Assembly: GCA_051294905.1 (NCBI GenBank)
Contig: CM119385.1
Location: 8,556,001 to 8,620,000, forward strand
Length of the DNA: 64,000 nucleotides
DNA from: Botryllus schlosseri
Taxonomy: Eukaryota
Reading direction: 5' to 3'
The position numbers and the translations under genes were made by a program. This document shows positions 6,401-51,900 of the stretch, in pieces. How positions within the stretch are numbered: the first letter of the stretch is position 1; each line of letters starts with the position of its first letter. The notes beneath the pieces are model-generated. The model had not been told where the DNA came from, ran no database searches, and saw nothing but the letters and a program-made list of their open reading frames with translations.

Positions 6401-8639
6401 GTAGAGGTCGGTAATTCAGGAAGCATAAAAAAGAGATATATGGCCTGGTGCAAATTACGGTCCACGTCGAAACACATTGAATGCCAAAACAACAACAGCA
6501 TTAGGTTTCTCGAATCGTGATTAATACAGAAGCTTTCGACAAAGTTCATGGCCGCATAAGTAATAAGTGTCCAATGCAGGTACTTCGTAAGTAATCCGTC
6601 GTTGATATTGATTTGTGTAGTTCTCGACCACATCGTTTACGACCTTCGTAAATCTAATCGGAGTTATAAAATGCTTAGCGTAGATGACCTGAGGTGATGT
6701 GTGCATCATATTGCAAACGTAATAACATTGTCAATTTTGACATTCAATGACATAATTCATTAACTCTGATATATTGAGTTCGAACTACAGTCGCCAGATT
6801 AATCCATCTTCAAAATTCCCCCTTATGGTGATCCAGTGCTGGTTATTTTGTACTTGAGCTACGAATCCGATTCTGATTCTGTATACTGGAAATCATGTCG
6901 CATATAGCCTATGCTAGATGTAGAATTATATATCACACAATATCAACTATTTACACTGTACTGATGTGAACTGTGTGATTTTAAATAATATCTGGAATCC
7001 GACATTTTCGGTTGTAAACTTCACGCTGACACTTTTCGCCAATCAATGAATGGAGGATCAATGGTTTAGAAAAGTGTGAGAAATTCTCGTCCTATGAAGC
7101 TGCCTGATATGTTGGTATATGCTTTACTCCGACGCTATACTATACGTGAGACCTCTGTATGGAGAATAGACACTGTGTTTTGCGTCTATCAGCTGTTCTA
7201 GCATTAAAGCTGTACTATCGAGTGAACAACTGTACATGAAATGCGTTAATCAGAACAACACCAGTCTTCAAGTGGCTTTAGTTATCACGAGTAGAGACGT
7301 TACCTTTAGAAAGTTTGGGTGAGATTTTCTGACAATATCGAGGGTAGATTTTGGAGTAATAGTTGTCAATTCGAGTAGTACTGCTCTTTTTGGGGTCGAT
7401 GCCTTGAAATAACTAAACTTCGGAGTCGGAGTAAAGAAAATTTTCTTACTAATTTTAGCAACATTTTCGGCACGTCGAATTATTACTTTATTTCTTCAGC
7501 TGGGCGAATAAATTTTGTGTCCTTTCATCTTTTTAAGGCTACTGAAAAAAACTCAATGTACCAATCCGTGCACGTCGATAGGAGGTCCTAGCTTACCGCA
7601 AATTCAAAATTCGGTTGTCCAAGAACGGAAGCAAGACTGGGGATCCAGCCGAAGTCTACCGGGGTCCGCAATTTAGCCTGTTTGTTCGTTAACAATAATG
7701 TAGATTCTAAAAGGAAATGACACCTGTGCTCCTCGGATTTCCGAGCATTACCTCACATTCGTACAATATTCGGCAATTCAGTTTTGATAAGCCCATTCTT
7801 ACGGAACAAAGATCGTTTCATCAATGTCGCTTCGTTGATAGTCGTCATCTTTACGACGGCGTACCGCGTACCCATTCACGCTAGTGATATTCACCGACGA
7901 GAGAAACGCTGGAGAACCGTTCTGCTAATGTGATGGGATCCTTGTCGATATTGTGCGTAGCGCTTGCGTAAAAAATCGGGCCGATAGACATTGACAGATT
8001 GAACTAACATGACTGGATATATATGACTTGATATAATGCATAAGTCATTACTAATATGTTAACCTGGGCGATAAATGTCTCGATGGGGAAGTCCAAAAGG
8101 AATATGCTTCTTCAAAAAGCCGTGAGCTATGGGCAATTGCGCATACACCATGTTATTCGGCTTGCTGTGGGCAATGGGCCATTAGGCATACAACATGCGT
8201 TATTTACGACCACTATCGCCTCATGGCATTGATTGTGTTTCTACAACAATTTCAAAGTTCAATGCGAGAAAGTTTTGTAGTGTCATTGCAGAGGTAGGCC
8301 TACAGGCTTATGGTAGTGAGTTAAAATAGTTCCAGTCAGAAATGGAAAAGATTCAGCGAGTGATATGACTGATGAATTAGCTAGCGATATTTATTTCGAG
8401 AATATTGAAATTGATTTGTATATTTGTCGACTATGGTATTTAAAATTCGACATTAGTTTTCAACTCACTACCTAATGTAAAAATATGGAAACCCTCGTCC
8501 TTTCTTTGAACACGCGGTGTGTCGATGCATTAAGATTGTATTTTCAAATGATTCGAGACTCTTGTTAGGTTGTGTGCAATTCTGTCTCGCGCATGAGAAG
8601 GTATTTGAGCGTTTGTGTGTTTCACGTTGAGTTCATAGC

Positions 8640-30900: not shown

Positions 30901-33900
30901 CAAGTCCAAGAGCAGAGGATTGAGCCAACGCAAGTCACCACCGAAAAATCGTGTCTCAAGTCAGACATGTTAAAACCCTGGTCTATGGTGCTGAATTCCA
31001 GTCAACGGCTAGTCCCGACTTAAAGTTGAGAAGGTAGGGACCCACAGCATACGCAGCAGGCATCTATTATTAAATATGGACTATGGGTTCAATCACACTG
31101 CGCTGTCACGACAGCAAATCTTAGTGTTAAATTTTAATAGAAATCTCGTCACTCTTTAAGCACGTTATCCGAGGATTGCTTGCCTTTCGTGTGGATTTCG
31201 GAATTGTGTATCCCCATAAGCTTGCATTCGCTATCCAAAATCCGTTCGATTGTCACCAAATTGTCGTCATTTTCAGAAAGGCGAAATGCAATGGGGCAGA
31301 GGCTGCACCGCAAATCGTTGATGCAAGGTCTCCTCAGTGTTACCAACGGTGAAGGGAGAAAACCGGATACGCTGCTGAAAGAGGGCAAGAAATTGCCCAG
31401 TTATCTCACTACTGATAGCGAGGACCACACGTACAGCATACCTGATTGTTGCTACAAGTCTCTGGCGGATCCGGACGAATTTTATGAAAATAAGGTACGG
31501 GCTTCCTTGTGTTATAGGTGACATCATTTTACTTGAGCGGGGTTGTTGATGAAAATATGGGAATTCACGCCGATGACATAAAAAACAAGCTCTAAAATAT
31601 GCACCTGATATATAGAATATGTATTTTCCGCAGTCGACAAAAATGTAGAACGCCGTAATTGAAGGCTCGGCGTAGCCAGGATGAAGTTTGAGCGGGGTGA
31701 CATTTTAACATAATGAGATGACGTCAAGAATATCCACTGGGACTGATGAGAAACGAATAACATATTTTTGAAGTCGCAAATTTACAAAAAGCATATGCCT
31801 TGCCCTTAGCTACGCCGTCGGAAGTACGTCTTTACATAACATATAGTCACAATTAGTAGGAGTTGTGCGAAGCCTGAAAGGTTCAGGTGCGTTTGAACTT
31901 GGACCTTTTTGACAGGTTCTGTCTGAACGCGAACGTGAACCTATGATGCCACGAGACGCCGTATTGCTAATTCCAACCCTACATTCCAGTGGAACGATAT
32001 ATTTAGGCACACGATACAGCGACGACTCAGGCCACATTATGCCCCGATGCTGAAGTATATGCTGACTTGTAAACCGTCGTCAAATGTAGGCCTATCAACT
32101 GTAGTTATCAAATGCTGTATAAATCCAAAAAAAATCAATATATTCTGTCGCTTTGCCAACAATTCCGACGAAGACTTGCAAGGACATATCAGCTTACGCC
32201 CAATCGGTCTAGGCAGACCGGAAAATGTATTCGGTGTCTGACTATTGCTACATTGATACTATGCAGGCAGAGTGTAAAACTGCTTTCTATACTTGCTACC
32301 GATATTTACCGATACCACAAGTTGCGCATTATAGCCAACGCCCCAATCGCACAGATTTGGATTTTCGTTCACAATCGAGATATATAATCAAGATAAATCC
32401 CGTACACCTGCTATATTTTTTACATTAGACAGCGATGTGTTCTTTATCAATTTCATTGATTGGTTGAATAAGCATCACTCGTGATTACCTACATGTGGTG
32501 AATTTCGTTCTTGATGTTATGTGATTGCGGGTCAAGTACAATATATTCACAAATATTTACAAATATTAACAAACTGAAAGCTGAATATTTCAAGCAAACT
32601 TTTCTAACAACGCATGTAAAAGTTTTGAGTTTGGCAAGGTGCATGTTTGTTTAGTGCCATGCATAGAGTTGTCCGAAGTTGAAATGCCAAGAATTTCTAC
32701 CAAAGATGTTATGATGACGCGAAAATTGTAACATGAAACTTTTTTGTATATTTCAATTTTCACTTCATTATAACATCTTTGTATGAAATTTATTGCATTT
32801 CAACTACGAGCAACTCTATGCATAGCGCTGGCAGCAGAAAACAAATCGCCATCAAACGAGCATGCACCTTGACAACCTCAAAAAGTTTACTTGCTTTGTT
32901 ACAAAAGTCTGCACGAAATATCCCGCTTTCTGTTTGTACATGTTTAGTGATTCACTGCTGTAAGCATGACCCTCAATCTCGCAACATCAAGAGCGAAATA
33001 CACTGCATGTGGTCAGCGAATGATGCTTATTCAACCAATCAATGAAATTAATATCGTTGTATGATGTAAAAAATCCAGCAGGCGCACGACTTGACTTCAT
33101 AGGTTTATTGTATCATAAAAACCAAACCCATGCGATTGAGGGGTTGGCCACTGCTGTATGACTTGTTAATGGGGTAATTTCGGTAGCAAGTATAGAAACC
33201 CATTTTACACTCTGGTCAATATCAACGTAACAATAATCAGACGCCGAATACATCGTCCGGTATCACCTAGACCAGGGGTGGGCAAACTACGGCCCGCGGG
33301 CCGCATGCGGCCCGCAACACCGTTATGTGCGGCCCGCGAGAGTCTAAAGAAATTTTTTTTAAATATTGATAAAATACATACTAAATATCGAATTAATGTA
33401 GGGACGTCATTAAAACTTTTTCTTAGTATATTTCCCCATGATAATTTTCAGACAATGGTTCCCAAACTGGGTAACACGCCCCCCCTTGGGGGTATGAAGG
33501 CATCTGAAGGGGGTGCGAAGCTGAGCTCAACTGAAAAAAATTTTCGCGCTCCGCGCGATTGTGATCCACCTCGTAATTATTGCTCTTTATTTAGTCTCAA
33601 TTTCATAGTTAAAAATCTCCCTTCCACAGTCGTAACCTACCATGCCATCAAACATGCTAGCATCTGGTTGCGTTTTTTGATATGACGATAAGGGGGCGCG
33701 AAATGTTTCACCATTATAAGGGGGGGGGCGTGTCTTAAAAAGTTTGAGAACCACTGTTCTAAGGTTAATACTTCCTATATTAATTTTTATGTTTAATTTC
33801 TGGCGCGACAGCCCGATCTCAGGGCCCACGCAGTTTGAAAGGTTTCAACTGCTAAACATCCCCGAAATACTAAACGAGATTGACATTATTCGGATCACGA

Positions 33901-42900: not shown

Positions 42901-45900
42901 GTCGGTGGCACGCCCATTCTTCGGCAGCTACTTTCAAACGCTTTGCACGAAATCTTAACGGCCTTTCTGTGAGCTTCTTTCAGGCTCAGTGTCGTTTTTT
43001 ATCATAATCTATCGAATAAGACATTACAACCGAGGATTTGTAAGATTTTCCAAATTATGGACAACCCTATTCACCATCAACAAATGCTTGTGGTTTAGTT
43101 GCGCGTACGACGGTGAACAGATAGTTGAAATCCCGGCGGTAATGTGTTCATGAATCAAAGATAACTGAAAATATAAAGCGACCAGTATAGTGTCAGTTAC
43201 CATAATGAGGTCTGGGGACATATCGCCGTATTTCGCCGAGGACTAAGGTAGAGAGTGATGACTCTTAACCTAAGTGCGTATATGCCAATAAGTCTTCTGT
43301 ACCGTCTCGCCAACATATACTTGTAGACGATATGCCCAAGTCTGGACTAGCTGAGCTACCATGCTTTTTTGTGGATTGCAATATGAAATAGGAGTGTCAT
43401 GAACTGTGTTGTTGACAGTTGGTTCTTCGTTGGTCGAGGGTGCTAAGACTTAGCAGATGCAATAAATGAGCGACCTGGCGTAAGCCACGGTCCTGTAGCC
43501 GTCATATCAATCGGTCAACTTGTGACCGTAGGATATTCAAGTCGCGAATATTGAGAATAGTATACTGCAGCGTTGTCTATTCAAATTCCCTCAGTCAACG
43601 TGCCCTTTTATTCACTTCTCTATGGCGACGCGCGCATCTACACAATATATTATATTAGAGACGTGACGCAATTAAAGCTGGTTCAATGCTGGTTCGGTGC
43701 CAAGTTGATCTGTGGCCATTAATAGAGTCAAATTAATAGTATGTCTCTATGTAGTTGTGATAAAAAGAAGACATAATTCGGTGTAGTTGAGATATTGCAA
43801 ATACTAACAATGGTTGCATGCATGCAAATGCATTGGTTCATTGCTTTAGTTTTGTAGTCGTTTACACAAAATAAACTGCGAGCGACGGGATATGTAGCAT
43901 TGTATTATAGTTCTGTGTCACAATTTTCGGCATAGAAGAACGCCGTACGTGGACTCGTGGAGCATGCCTCGATGGTGATTGCGCAGCAATCGGGTTAGGG
44001 CTTAGGGTTAGAGCAGTGGTTATCAGCCACCGGTCTGCGTCAATTCCCCCTGTCCTTCAACTATATTACAATTTTACATGTCTATAACAAAATGCCAATT
44101 AATGCTTGTGCATTAATTAGAGGACTCCACATCAAATTTTAAATTGATTCAGAAATTTCGCATATCATGTCGTGTGGTCTACTTTTTACTGAACGTATAC
44201 GTCGCAATACAGCAAGTGCTATACGGTACCAAAGTGTTTAAAAGTAGCCTAAGAATACTTTTTGAAGTACCAAAATTCATTAAAATTCGACGTTACAACT
44301 AACGATATATGACAGTATAATAGATGCTAGCAAACTGCAGGTCGAAGTTCTTACAAAAGAAACCAAACATCAATATTAAGTTCGTCATTAAATTGAAGTT
44401 CCCACTGCTATTTACTTTGAGTAACATACACATTTGTCGTAATTATATTTGCAGGTGAGCAAAATTTCTTTTGAACTTTTATCTGTCCCAAAGCTAAGAA
44501 GGTTGATAACCACTGGGTTGGAGTAAGGCGATTAAATTGACCCGCTAAACTACACTATGCTGATAACAACCTGAAGAGATTCATCCTGTCCGCGCGAAAA
44601 GCGTATCAAAATTGAATACCCTCATATATGTCAATTGGGCTGGCCTCGCGGGGTAAGGACATTGTGCACGTCACAGCGAAATTATTCATTGAACGTTTGC
44701 AAAATTAATCATCCCCAATGTACGACATGCTAATTTGGAAAACGTCCGGATAACAAAAGACTTATTCTAAATCATTCATTACCGCCCGACGCGTATCGAG
44801 ATCACTGATTGAATAGTTACAGAATCTGGCTCCGCCGATCTACATTTGTGATTTCCGCACGCGGTCAGAGCATAATTTGGTGGATATGCTGGTAAATACT
44901 CACGATTCTGTCACGAGCAAAGTTTCTGCGAAGAATACCCGGATCTGAGCTCTCTAACGTTATTAGTAACGATCGCAAACTTCTTCTCAAGGCCACACCG
45001 CGGTCTTGTAGGCCCTGCGATAATTGTAATAGGGGATTTGTTTTGCGGGTTGCGTAGCGGTAAAGGCTCGTTCGAGTGCGCTGTGTTTTGCTTCTCTTGT
45101 AGCCTGGCTCTATCCGTGTATTGTGATACTTGATTTATGGATGATATATAGTTTCTCATAAATGTAGGAACAGAAATCAAAATTTATGCGGCTGATGCCA
45201 TTGACATGACATGACGCTAAGTTAAATTCATATTTACTGAGTTAATGTATGGAGATCGTACTGTTAGATCCGAGTCACAGAGAAGTTTACCGATATCAAT
45301 TGCGTTCCTAAGATTAGAAGAGATATTGGGATCAAGCCCTTGATCAAATTCGCTTGGCGACCGGCGTTAAGGCACCCTCAATCTTATCAATTGGCAAGAA
45401 TGCGTTTGAGAATTCTTGAAGTTTCCAATTCCGTGTTAGCGACCAATTGGCAGAATATAGACATTCGGTATTGCTAGAAAGATGTCGCATTATCGCAGTG
45501 CATTAATGACATTAAGAACCATTGTTTATTTATTAAAGGTGGTCGATGTTGTGGGAAATAAATTGTAACGTATGATTGAGAATAGATTACTATCGAGTAT
45601 CGAATAGCGGGCATGACATCACATGCTGTTGATGAATAAACCTGGTTGACGATTATCGAACATAGTTTCAAAGAAAGATTATCATCGCAACGTATATAAC
45701 ATCGATAAGTTGGCTTTAGACTCATTCTGATGGTTCGAAATGATAAAATTAGGAAACTAGCGACAGATACTTCTGGAATGTGATTTTTGGTAACTGCAAT
45801 CCGCGCACTTTACTGGTCCGAAAACCGGAAATACAATGAACTCTGAGAAAACATAGCTTTCGCGTTGTTTCGCTTCAATCGACACTTGGCGGCGTGGCGC

Positions 45901-48900
45901 ATAGATTCGGTATAGGCAACAGTCCGAAACTTCTACTCTTGACTGAATCATTCACGATTTTTATCGCCGCTCGCGGGCTGTCTGGGTAGCGTCGGGCTCT
46001 ATCGAAAGTGTATTATCGTTGTCTTCTTTATAGAAAGATAGTGAAAAAATGGCAATCTGAGTAAGGTGGTCGAAATCACAGCTGTTTTGCTCGGCGGTTC
46101 ATCATAGTTTGGTTGAGTTAGATTATTTTTAAGTTTTTGGATTGATCAGACTGGAATTAAGATTTCTGAATTTAACACACTATGGCATATTCGAAGGTGC
46201 AGATTGTCTGGTGTAGTCATGTTATTAGTCGGCCTCGGGCCGGGCACTGCAGTAGATCAGTTTAAATATGGCCGCCGCTTACGCACGCCAGCGTTCGTAC
46301 TCAGTCGATGAAATAGGCGCCTCCGCGCACAGGCCCAGTCTAATCGAACAGTGCGCCCAAAAGAGCGCTAGCACGCGCGATAAAATCGCAAGGAGAAAGA
46401 AAATAGAATATGCCTCCCTCCCTTGCCTGTCGCCGACAGACAAGGCGCCGTCCCTCTCGAGCCTGCACCGGGAAGCAAAACAGCGCGCGAAGCACAAGAA
46501 AATGCAGGAGTTGCAGCATCAACACGAACAAGCCAAGCTTGAAAAGAAAATACGGCGCCGCCGGAAATGGTCTTCCGGAGAGATGGCCACTCGCTCCGGA
46601 CACCTCATGAGAAACGTAGCCACTAGGATACGATCGTTCTTCGACACCAAGGTACACGGCGATTATGGCGATCTGAAACCCCAGGCTTTTTCGCGTCGCT
46701 TCGCCGGAACGCGCGCATTTTGTATCGGTAACCGACCTCGTAAATATCGGATAACTGTGTGCACTGTGCATCCTATCTCGTGTGATCAGTTCGTTCGTGT
46801 ATTTAGAATTTTAATCAATTCAAAACACCAACTTGTTTTGCGATAGAATGAAAAGATAACATGGTATCGACACCGCTGATATTAGTCGTTTATATCAAGC
46901 ACTTACACAACTAGAAGATATTCAATTTTTCAATCTAGTTATCCAAGTCTGACCACCTTGGCCGTGAACAGGTAAATAAGAGGCGTGGACAGTCGGCAGT
47001 AATCGTGATCAATCTGCTGTAATCTCTACTACTTATCGATTGGTAATTATTAATTATTAAAACATATAGGGATATTATCATGGATTGGCGCTTTTTGCGC
47101 GTTCATACAGTGCCGTTTGTTATATCGGTACGTCTCCATATTGTATTAATTTTGTTGGATAATGGGGGAACTGTTTTAATCACGTTCTTTTTAGTTTTGA
47201 GCTTTGAGGCGGGTCGGCGGCGAGCGGGATAAAACCGCGGCATCGGGGACAATATAATTAAACAACGTGCATTACCAAAACGGATTTACAAACATGCCGT
47301 AATAAGAGACGGATCAATTTTCTCAGCTGGCTCATGGCCACGATAATCCGTCGGGCAGATTCAGCTATCATCGATACAATGACAGAAATGCGACTGCGCG
47401 ATTCACATCGCATCGCCGCGTAACCATATCAATACAACTGTTCGCGCTGTTATTTTTGACGCACAAAACACATAACCTTCTGTTGGCTATCTTGCGCCTG
47501 TCTTGAATAGACGGGATACATGTGCTTATTCAGAGCCTATTCACTGATGATCACTGTGACACCGTGTCGGAATTGTGCGCGTGATTGGAAGGCGATTTTA
47601 TCATGGGTGATTTTGTTAAATCCTATCAAATTTCGGCTATTGTTGCAACGCGCGACTGTCAACTGTCAGCATATTGGTACCATTCCCGTGCCCTCTATAG
47701 CGGATTCATGCCGCATGTCAAACGGTATGAAGTTGTATGCGGGTGCTTCCGGCAATGTTATGTCCCGGGGCGTGTTGCGCTGTGTTTTGTGTACACATCG
47801 CGTGTTGTTTTATAGAATATGGCGGGGAATCAGTGTATCTTACTCGGATTTGGATTTTGGAAAATGTATTGAAATTGCATTTTAATCTTCGCGTTTTTCG
47901 ACCAATCTTTTTGAATTTATACATCTGTTGTTTATGTAAGAAGCGAGCTTCTGTGATTTGGTGTGATTTACGCGGTTCATGTGCGGTTGGCCAATCGGCC
48001 TTCATCATTGGTTTATTAGCAATTTTTATCAGTTCAATACACCACAAAAAATGCGATACAATGAATAGACAGGAAGATGTCGAAGCGACTTGGATTTGTC
48101 AATGGAATCGGACACCCACCTTGGCCTAGGCGTAGTAAAGAGGAGGCATGCACACTGAATGAAAGTAAAGAATACAGTATAGAAAAAGAAAGCGACAAGA
48201 AATAGGGCGGCATGTCATTGGAAGCCTACGATGTATCAAAGCACTCTGCCTTTTCCAACTGCGGTTTGAAGCGGTATATGGAAATAATTTCGTGGTCTGA
48301 TCGTTATTAACCCCATTTGCCCCCAATCGTGTCTGATGATAGGCTGGATAAAAGGATACGGCATTTTGCATGCAATTTCAAATTTATCAGAATACCGCTT
48401 TTCATAAAGCAATTTGGTCGAACCAAACAATTTCTGAATTTAGAATGCATTCTTAACATCGTTATTGAAACTTAATCGTCGTTTGAACGCTAATGACATT
48501 GCCTTGACAGGCCAGATTTAGCTCTAATATGGCTTGGTAACCATACGGTTGTGTATATAATACACTATAAATAATAATAACACTAATATTATGATATGAT
48601 ATAATAATGATAATAATGACCAAAGATGTATATTCGTCCACAAAGTTATTTGCAATTTATTCAAGTCGTGTTTTTACGTGATCAGTATTGTTACGTAAGT
48701 TGCAGCGTCGATTGTCACCATTATTTTTTCCCACGTTGTCTTTACTGGTTAAATTCCTTCTGGGGTGCGCACCTAGCAGAGCATCGTGATTATGTAACTA
48801 TAACTCAGGTATCTCGTATTGCTGGATCGCACCTTCATCCGCGAAATATTTTTGTTTCAGACTTACATCGTCCTCAACAAGCAAGGCACCACGTTTCGAT

Positions 48901-51900
48901 TCAGCGAGTCCAAATCCCTCTTCCTATTCAACCAGCAAAGCCGCGTCCGACAGTCTTGCATCAACCTCTTCATCCGTCCCATGTTTTCCCACTTCATCAT
49001 GCTCGTGATTTTGGCTAATTGCGCGTGCATGATGTTAGCCGAGCCTCCGGCCTGGATCGAAACGCATCTGGAGTGAGTAATGGCATCGTTAATTTGCGTG
49101 CTTGTAACGGGCCGTATATACTGATGTACGATCTTTGCTCCGAACCTTGTAAGTCGTCAAAAGCCTAATATTAGATATTCTAATTACCTCCACGCAGAGA
49201 TTAAGGCTGTTCCTATTAAACTTTCAACAATAATTGCTACTCATTTCGAGCTTAAATACAGCCTGCGAGTTTACGGCGTGCGTGTAATACACACAGCGCT
49301 AAGTGCTTGCACGTTTTTAAAATTCCCTGCAAGACATGGCTTTTTATGCTTCAGTAGTAGTACAGCAGTATCCGTGGTATTGTGACATTCGCATGTTTCG
49401 TAAAATCGCTTTGTGATTCGCCAATGTTGTTTGTCTGCGTCTGGCTGGTTGAGAACAAATTAAAAAGGACAAGTGACGTAATAGGTGTTGATTGCTACGT
49501 TTCTTTTTGTGTACGTAATTTGTCAGAAGTGTGCTCTGCGTGCAAAGGAGATTCGTGCTACCGAGCGGCTCGTGATATATCATTGTGACGCGTGCTCATA
49601 ATATTAGTGGAAACGACAGATACGTTTCGACAGCTTGATACAGTACTTTTGCGAGTGTGCCGCATGCAATATTGATCGAATGCCATTCGTGTATTCACAA
49701 TACGCAAGCTCACACGAATCTTTATGGGAGAAAGTACTACTCTTTTTTTGACCTGTGAATCACGGGTAACAATGTCAACAACATGTAAGCAACAGGCATA
49801 TTGCATATTTTTATAATTTCATATTTTCTAGGCGTATACCTGTTCTGATGAATATAATTTTTACACAAGCGATTCGGTAATGGACAGAATTTAGTCGGTA
49901 GGTGTTGCCTGAAAAAGGACAATCCACTTGAACTCGATTCAATATACGGCGGAATAATTTGGTTTCCAACATATGTAATCTTCAATTGCACGTTTCCTGA
50001 TGAGGACAATCATTATCGGAATGCACGTGTTGTTGTTTTGATACTCATGGTGTTTTGATGGACTATACTATGGTAGTTTTACACCTTGTCGGTATTTCTT
50101 ATTGTGATTCCTGATCTGCCGACATGTATAACCTACACAAGAGACGCTCTGCTATGTTTTCTTGCATCAATTTTTAGTGGCATTTGTCATTTGCGTAAGT
50201 CGTGACGATGCACCCTGCAGTTTCGAGTATAACCACCCCGAGCGGATATTCTTGACCTATCCTAATATTTTGAAACTATTTACTTGAGTAGTTGTCAAAT
50301 TTTCATTTTATACTCGCACTTGGAATAATTTCGACATTTCCTGCAAATTTCTTGCCATGTGTAATTTCGTAGAAATCTACGTTGCTACTATTGCGTATAC
50401 TTGTGTGTAGGGTTGCATTTAAAACAAAATCTATTTAAAGCAAACATGTTTAAAACAAGGCTCTTGTTTAAAACATGTTTTTTTTTAAGCCATGACGTCA
50501 CGAATTTTCAACTGTGACGTCATGGTGGATTGGCTTTGACAATTGAAAATATAGGGCAAATACAGCTCATATGACGAAATACCTACCTACTATAGCTGTT
50601 TCATCGACAGTTTTGAAGGTTCCAACCATCCCATATCGTAAACGTCTGCTATATCGGGTGGTAATGGTCCGTAGGCTCCTACAACAGTATTTACACAATT
50701 ATGGCATAATTATACAACTTAAAAAAACTCATTTTTATTAAAAAGGGCTTCAATTTAAATGTAAACCTATTACTTGTGTACCAAAAATGACTACCTCTGA
50801 GCATACTATCCGGAAGCTATTCGCTAGTTTGGATAAGTCTTCCTTCAACGCGGTCACAGAATATACCTTGTAAGGCAGATTGCGTCATCGCCATAATCAC
50901 TGCTTGTGACCCAAGAAGTACTTTCGACGTCTTTACTCAAAATGATGCGACGACGCAAGCGCGACGTTAAACTGTGACATTTCGTCGTTGGTGAAGCCTC
51001 GCCAGACTAGTGCTAACAACTGGATTTTCAAGATGCGTAACTAGAACTGGAAACTGCAACTAATTACCTTTAAAGATGCGCAACTAAATAACGAAAGAAC
51101 CTTACTAGTTTTAATTCCGAGGCAACTCCTTCATTTTAATTTTATCGGAATTGCATCGGTTACTGGAGATCGAATAATCGAATAATCGTTTCAAAAGGAC
51201 GGGGTTTCGACCAGATAACCCACCCTCTGGCTAGAACACTGTTCGTACTGATGGCTCTGGGCCATAATCGGGTGCATTAACATCATAAAACAGAGTACCG
51301 GCATCACGATTCATACGAAATAGCGACACTTGTTTTGTAGTTGTTCGGAAACTAATTTTTGCGTAACTAGAACTACTCAATTTAAAGTTTTGCGACTAGA
51401 ATTTAAGCTAGAACTACTACAAAACCAGTAGTTAGATGATGGTAAACTAAAATAACTAGATTGGCTGTTTGGGCAAGTTTGAACCGCGCGCCTTTCGTTT
51501 TTAGATATGTTTTCACCGCGATCTACTGTTTCGAGGCGGCCGTGAAGATTGTCGGGCGCGGGTTCGTCCTGCATCGCTTCGCGTACCTGAGAGATCCCTG
51601 GAACTGGCTGGACTTCCTTGTTATCTTATTCGCGTGAGTGCCTTTATCTCGTTGAGGCGGGTAATTTGCAGTTAGGAGCGGATAGAAATAGTTCTCATTC
51701 AAGTATAGATAGGGGAAAAGGAAAGACTTGGAGTAGTTTTTCAATCAAACTCAGACCTTGGTCTCTAGAAAACGGGGCTCTGAAACATTTTCACTGCGGG
51801 CACCTTCAAGTTTGTGGGTGGTTACGTACACCACCAAAATTTCAGAAGCCGATGGCCAAAGTAAGAAGACAGGTATTCCCTTCGCCGCCCAATCCTGATT

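Follow-up and report, generated by a model that had tools for sequence, protein, structure and literature searches.

In the stolidobranch ascidian Botryllus schlosseri, a tunicate gene for a voltage-gated sodium channel (Nav) of the Nav1 type is considered here to have, with a probability of about 0.8, a genuine coding alternative first exon that is spliced to the common exons of the channel. The exon lies on the plus strand at positions 46268–46651 of the DNA stretch analyzed (hereafter the window: 64,000 nucleotides (nt) of contig CM119385.1, assembly GCA_051294905.1, positions 8,556,001 to 8,620,000 of the forward strand), and would give the channel an N-terminal head different from the canonical one. 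It is probably transcribed from an internal promoter in intron 1, and we lean, with less assurance, towards both heads being used in a regulated way.

The layout of the gene in the window is as follows, all features being on the plus strand. The canonical first coding exon (31291–31494, 68 codons) ends in FYENK, with its ATG and frame intact and with the donor AAG/GTACGG in phase 0 (a slash marks a splice site). The coding part of the alternative first exon (46268–46651, 128 codons) runs from its own ATG to the donor AAG/GTACAC, also in phase 0, and is followed by a GT..AG intron of 2,209 nt (46652–48860). The acceptor tttgtttcag/ACT, read at 48860/48861, opens the TYIVLNK strand of common exon 2 (48861–49072), which extends into segment S1 of domain I (DI-S1) and ends at 49072 with the phase-2 donor GA/GTGAGT; this end corrects an earlier description of the exon. 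Common exon 3 (51505–51633) covers DI S2–S3, and the window ends within domain I of the channel gene. Thus both first exons end AAG/gta in phase 0 ahead of a single TYIVLNK acceptor, just as a first-pass annotation of the same DNA had described them. Exon 2 matched, among structures of the PDB, the N-terminus and DI-S1 of Nav1.4 (best match, E = 2e-13), Nav1.5 and Nav1.7, ahead of the Cav chains. By its TYIVLNK strand and DI S1–S3, the predicted product of the host gene qualifies as a Nav1-type sodium channel alpha subunit.

The strongest evidence for the alternative exon comes from RNA. Four sequencing runs were aligned to positions 44200–49400 of the window, X2 and X3 as assembled contigs (those of Logan for X2) and X19 as raw reads sampled at 6%. 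A contig of X2 (969 nt, depth 23.9) was composed of 30 loose letters, positions 46194–46649, positions 48859–49072 and a further 269 letters. Its joint skips 2,209 nt and, after resolving a 2-nt ambiguity, corresponds to 46651/48861 with GT..AG borders, i.e. the very junction that the first-pass annotation had proposed to look for. The first 30 letters past 49072 match exactly the window from 51505 onwards, behind a tttttag acceptor. Since the contig continues in this way through exon 2 into exon 3, the alternative exon is joined to at least two further channel exons, and does not belong to a separate, nested transcript. The run carried the label 'RNA?', which can be taken as confirmed complementary DNA (cDNA) because the contig itself shows splicing. 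In X3, which comes from a second study, one contig spans 46220–46612 of the alternative exon at a depth of about 5, while the downstream channel contig (2,581 nt, depth 11.1) reaches exon 2 from intron position 48733, thus including 128 nt of intron. The latter entry could correspond to a retained intron, to pre-mRNA, to a branch choice in the assembly or to a third, minor start; the in-frame extension 48733–48860 contains no ATG. X2 displayed also an intronic contig of low depth (2.4) at 48585–48782. Concerning the other two runs, X19 (bulk RNA-seq) gave a few reads on the alternative exon and about one on exon 2, and X23 gave no reads on either exon. A search of runs found the words of the alternative exon also in small, transcriptome-sized contig sets of several studies.

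X2 and X3 had in common five differences from the assembly (46231, 46369, 46388, 48931 and 48992), one of them in the untranslated region (UTR), two synonymous and two changing an amino acid (A41T and N24S). Reads of X19 showed three of the five, namely 46369, 46388 and, in half of the reads, 48931. Probably these are common alleles unlike those of the sequenced individual.

The amounts of RNA admit another interpretation, according to which the gene has its main or only first coding exon at 46268, with 31291–31494 little used or vestigial, so that the two exons would reflect a replacement in the lineage instead of a regulated alternative. In X2 the sole contig over exon 2 is the one that carries the 46268 exon, with the same depth of 23.9 throughout; in X19 the 46268 exon has no fewer reads than exon 2; and the aligned positions 44200–49400 showed no canonical junction. 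However, position 31494 lies beyond those positions, these runs were selected for containing the 46268 exon, and its depth in X3 is only about half that of the downstream channel contig. Moreover, 31291–31494 has an intact frame, a good ATG and a good donor, and shows homology to the N-terminal exons of paralogous genes. Taken together, a replacement seems unlikely.

With respect to the start of the transcript, the 5′-untranslated part of the alternative exon extends over 46194–46267, as delimited by the 5′ ends of the contigs and a scan for upstream ATGs. The 30 loose letters at the 5′ end of the X2 contig are Illumina adapter followed by TTGTATT. The contig showed neither an upstream exon nor an AG acceptor at this end, where the adapter letters adjoin 46194, and the depth over 44548–46113 was zero in all four runs. 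A promoter internal to intron 1 is the explanation we favor because depth sets in abruptly, the contig begins directly behind adapter, and neither an acceptor nor a leader is present. The X2 contig, starting around 46194 without any upstream exon, also speaks against the obligatory in-line inclusion of the exon between 31494 and 48861. It is conceivable that the 5′ end was made instead by processing of a long pre-mRNA transcribed from the upstream promoter, e.g. by spliced-leader trans-splicing, and indeed three AGs occur just upstream of the ATG (46251–46252, 46254–46255 and 46259–46260). However, both contigs are collinear with the genome beyond those AGs, up to 46194 in X2 and to 46220 in X3; the letters before 46194 are adapter plus the 7 nt mentioned, where the genome has CG and not AG; and there is no intronic depth upstream. 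Such processing is therefore held to be quite improbable, and the internal promoter is retained as the probable source of the transcript.

The coding character of the exon was apparent from several properties of its frame. The ATG at 46268, which the first-pass annotation had already regarded as the exon's own start, has a good context (A at –3 and G at +4) and is preceded, 15 nt upstream, by an in-frame TAG at 46253–46255. The open reading frame (ORF) from this ATG to the stop beyond the donor has 192 codons, is the longest on its strand of the 17.4-kb intron, and was equaled after shuffling in only 1 of 500 trials; a frame of 128 codons, the length of the exon part, arose in 29 of 500 and is not rare by itself. 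A codon log-odds score, for which the remaining exons of the window served as training set against intron trinucleotides, was +15.7 for 46268–46651 in frame 0, and –5.4 and –9.9 when the two other frames were read. Intron windows of equal length, about 1,870 in number, had a mean of –32.7 and a maximum of 3.5, and none reached +15.7. The spliced frame formed by the alternative exon, exon 2 and exon 3 is free of stops over 241 codons. Translation presumably begins at 46268.

An out-of-frame ATG is located upstream of this start, at 46219, and opens 30 codons (46219–46311) that overlap the main start. It lies inside the longer 5′ form of X2, which begins at 46194, while the X3 contig begins one base past its A, at 46220. 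The choice of start site relative to this upstream ATG could tune translation, and its presence in the longer form may damp that of the 128-codon frame.

Evidence of conservation was sought in protein collections. A HMMER search of 1.84 billion representatives yielded one true homologue of the alternative head, P0001 (E = 8e-34), a 153-residue ORF that runs through the donor as the genomic ORF does. It is carried by a Logan contig of 4.5 kb assembled from another public sample, SRR25569784; a 58-residue ORF at the end of this contig is a candidate for the orthologous exon 2. P0001 is 55% identical to the 128-residue peptide over residues 3–126, with a single gap of one residue, with the start aligned and with the frame open. 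The similarity ends at the position of the donor. The conserved blocks are RQRSYSVDE, EYAS-PCLSPT, the stretch comprising the charged helix and RRRRKWS, and the terminal F-D. Two other matches from the representative library, to a p53-domain protein and to a bacterial SpaA-repeat protein, were discarded as low-complexity chance matches. A word-indexed protein search gave nothing for the 128-residue peptide and nothing for the exon 2 ORF; run with the 192-residue ORF and scored on residues 1–128, it returned P0001 only, with no spliced, transcript-derived proteins of any species.

These data bear on the possibility that the alternative exon is an untranslated leader, perhaps blocked by the ATG at 46219, in a transcript that serves regulation or encodes a channel shortened at its N-terminus. 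The overlap of that upstream ATG with the main start, in the form seen in X2, could be taken in its favor. On the other hand, the exon bears a strong coding signature in frame 0, and its frame, start and motifs are kept in P0001, with similarity halting at the donor. In addition, the frame runs stop-free into the channel, where the next in-frame ATG falls inside DI-S1. There is thus only a slim chance that the exon is untranslated. Hardly credible is the insertion of the exon as an in-line cassette between 31291–31494 and exon 2 through a weak acceptor at 46255/46256. The position of this acceptor agrees in frame with the ATG as well as with the phase-0 donor at 31494, but it has no pyrimidine tract before it and is crossed by both contigs into upstream genomic sequence and not into exon 31291–31494. 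The first-pass statement that the exon has no good upstream acceptor has to be qualified by the weak AG at 46254–46255, which would keep the frame open if used but is used by neither contig.

Several points weigh against the interpretation of 46268–46651 as a coding alternative first exon. The junction 46651/48861 rests on one assembled contig of one run, whose RNA label was a guess, and the raw reads, fewer than three, do not suffice for an independent listing of the junction. Relative abundances are biased, since the runs had been chosen for the presence of the alternative exon. As for the 5′ end, it marks where the assembly stops and not a capped start. Conservation rests, at the protein level, on the single homologue P0001, whose cluster has one member. 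Finally, the status of the exon as an alternative one would follow from the exon 31291–31494 being intact and homologous to those of other Nav genes.

The peptide encoded by the alternative exon was as previously quoted, with exactly 128 residues and with the RQRSYS motif, the charged helix and the RRRRKWSS stretch. All these elements are kept in P0001. The alternative head is strongly basic, with an isoelectric point (pI) of 10.7 (30 Lys plus Arg versus 12 Asp plus Glu), compared to 6.05 for the canonical head. AlphaFold2, run with a two-sequence alignment, predicted residues 1–24 to be disordered and residues 25–49 to form a low-confidence helix, followed by a linker and by one long helix over residues 63–127, with a predicted local distance difference test score (pLDDT) of 86–98, which runs up to the TYIVLNK junction. 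Compared with Pfam, PDB profiles, Rfam and the ESM Atlas, the 128-residue peptide gave nothing meaningful; a match to the syntaxin Vam3 (E = 0.018) was set aside as coiled-coil composition. As to motifs, both the RxRxxS site (RQRSYSVDE) and an RXR-type patch (RRRRKWS) with neighboring serines are conserved in P0001, and RQRSYSVDE fits, as a sequence pattern, the one expected for basophilic kinases and 14-3-3 proteins.

The claim that the two N-termini are wholly different was borne out. Between the alternative and the canonical exon, BLASTP found two tiny collinear matches with E = 4-5, and hhalign gave a probability of 0.2. An origin of the alternative exon by duplication and divergence of the canonical one, as might be surmised from the collinear HRxSL, LP and F[FY][DE]xK, was rejected as unsupported by these values. 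The canonical exon, for its part, can be recognized in other genes of the same genome, which contains two paralogous Nav genes 61–65% identical in exon 3. In one of them (exon 3 region at G000:C13:5777259-5777378), the N-terminal exon (L022:3186-3323) contains DLEQSKTLPEYL and ends LLDIDPYYADK; the canonical exon, with its LKEGKKLP and DPDEFYENK, aligns to it with E = 0.007. In the other (exon 3 region at G000:C10:22348108-22348230), the N-terminal exon (L018:1963-2067) contains GEVLPQYYG and ends PLADLDPYYK, and the alignment has E = 0.7. Searched alone against the PDB, the canonical exon gave no match. No copy of the alternative exon was found in either paralogue within 40 kb upstream of exon 3. 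In the first of these paralogues, the equivalent of exon 2 appears split in two (L022:6242-6361 and 7681-7806).

Ahead of the canonical ATG by 14 nt, at 31276/31277, there is an acceptor-like ttttcag/aaaggcgaaatgcaATGG. Such a layout would fit either a further untranslated exon upstream or spliced-leader trans-splicing, both being candidate explanations for the 5′ end of the canonical form.

The mechanism that we propose can be outlined as follows. Transcription would start within the 17.4-kb first intron, at about 46187–46220, most likely from an internal promoter. The alternative exon would supply some 50–75 nt of 5′ UTR and the 128-codon frame, and would be spliced from the phase-0 donor at 46651 to the acceptor at 48861. 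The product would be a complete channel that is exchanged in all that precedes the TYIVLNK strand, the 68-residue, near-neutral canonical head (LKEGKKLP, DPDEFYENK) being replaced by the 128-residue, strongly basic one. The new head is predicted to have a disordered tip with RQRSYSVDE, a short helix, a proline/serine linker and a helix some 65 residues long, with RRRRKWS at its end just before the membrane domain. Placed by serines and accompanied by the RxRxxS site, the RRRR patch would resemble the arginine-based endoplasmic reticulum (ER) retention signals that are relieved by phosphorylation or by binding of 14-3-3 proteins. As a guess from motif logic only, the time and place of the channel's arrival at the surface would be under the control of the head, and permeation through the pore would not be altered. 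An isoform-specific control of surface delivery, or of regulation, may be conjectured by analogy with such signals.

Some other features of the region are worth describing. The ratio of observed to expected CpG is about 1.0–1.4 across the whole window, which gives no contrast at the alternative start, and a CpG/GC island there was dropped as a candidate. The alternative exon plus 1 kb upstream is single copy in the genome of 495.5 Mb; the uniqueness of this sequence ruled out a transposon-derived promoter, exon or ORF. Within the intron 46652–48860, positions 48002–48225 of the window are occupied by a 224-bp element for which the genome contains over 3,000 candidate copies, the 40 scored being 99–100% identical. 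It had very high depth in all four runs, with reads leaving both of its ends into other sequence, and it had no Rfam match. The T-runs before 48002 suggest a minus-strand poly(A) tail; the element looks like a very young retroposed element or one resembling a short interspersed nuclear element (SINE).

The cytoplasmic N-terminus of Nav1 channels is conserved and, in mammals, it has been implicated in export from the ER, in the binding of partners and in dominant-negative disease effects. A natural isoform without this domain, but with the channel otherwise retained, amounts to an experiment of nature on the purpose of the domain. It could even be speculated, as a tentative and rather unlikely extension, that the phospho-site tip, the basic helix and the RRRR patch make up a regulatory head specific to the stolidobranch lineage and predominant in a divergent Nav1 paralogue, where it would displace an N-terminal domain otherwise conserved from insects to mammals and would act as a switch of surface delivery or as a tether to a lineage-specific partner. 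In practical terms, a gene model restricted to the canonical exon would overlook an isoform that may, in some samples, be the predominant one. In the tunicate Ciona, Nav1a has been cloned, and CiNav1a, CiNav1b, CiNav1c and CiNav2 have been listed, in a paper whose text makes no mention of the N-terminus or of splicing; the same work makes clear that oocytes can be used to express ascidian Nav1 channels (PMC8192821). Like the CiNav genes, the host gene studied here is a tunicate Nav1-type gene, and its genome has at least two further paralogues. Expression in oocytes would allow a direct comparison of the two heads.

Regarding other known systems, the vertebrate SCN genes (SCN1A, SCN2A, SCN5A) have several promoters with alternative untranslated first exons that join a common second exon, leaving the protein unchanged. 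The ascidian gene resembles them in the joining of alternative first exons to a common second exon, but its alternative exon carries an ATG and 128 codons. Liu, Wu and Zakon are said to have described in J Neurosci in 2008 an N-terminal splice form of a channel of the electric fish Sternopygus, Nav1.4bL, in which about 50 residues are added ahead of the normal N-terminus. Both cases have in common that a Nav N-terminus varies by the use of an alternative 5′ exon, the effect on channel behavior being that of Nav1.4bL, whereas the ascidian isoform drops the conserved N-terminal exon altogether.

The closest parallel is found in a different channel family. The first exons 1a, 1b and 1c of Cav1.2 (CACNA1C) encode different N-termini, vary by tissue, and affect trafficking and drug sensitivity or pharmacology (PMC5748662). 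As in Cav1.2, the ascidian gene is predicted to encode a four-domain voltage-gated alpha subunit and would have mutually exclusive first coding exons, which appear to be transcribed from separate starts and to provide different cytoplasmic N-termini. The N-termini of Cav1.2 are, however, short and functionally studied, while in the ascidian case, known from sequence, 128 residues are exchanged and the conserved N-terminal motifs of the family are removed. No publication describing an alternative N-terminus of a tunicate Nav channel came up in a literature search. What is new for Nav is a coding alternative first exon, with an unusually large swap that removes a domain conserved across the family; the mechanism itself is ordinary and known from Cav1.2. 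The isoform shows that coding alternative first exons can be a source of diversity in Nav genes, as they are in Cav1.2.

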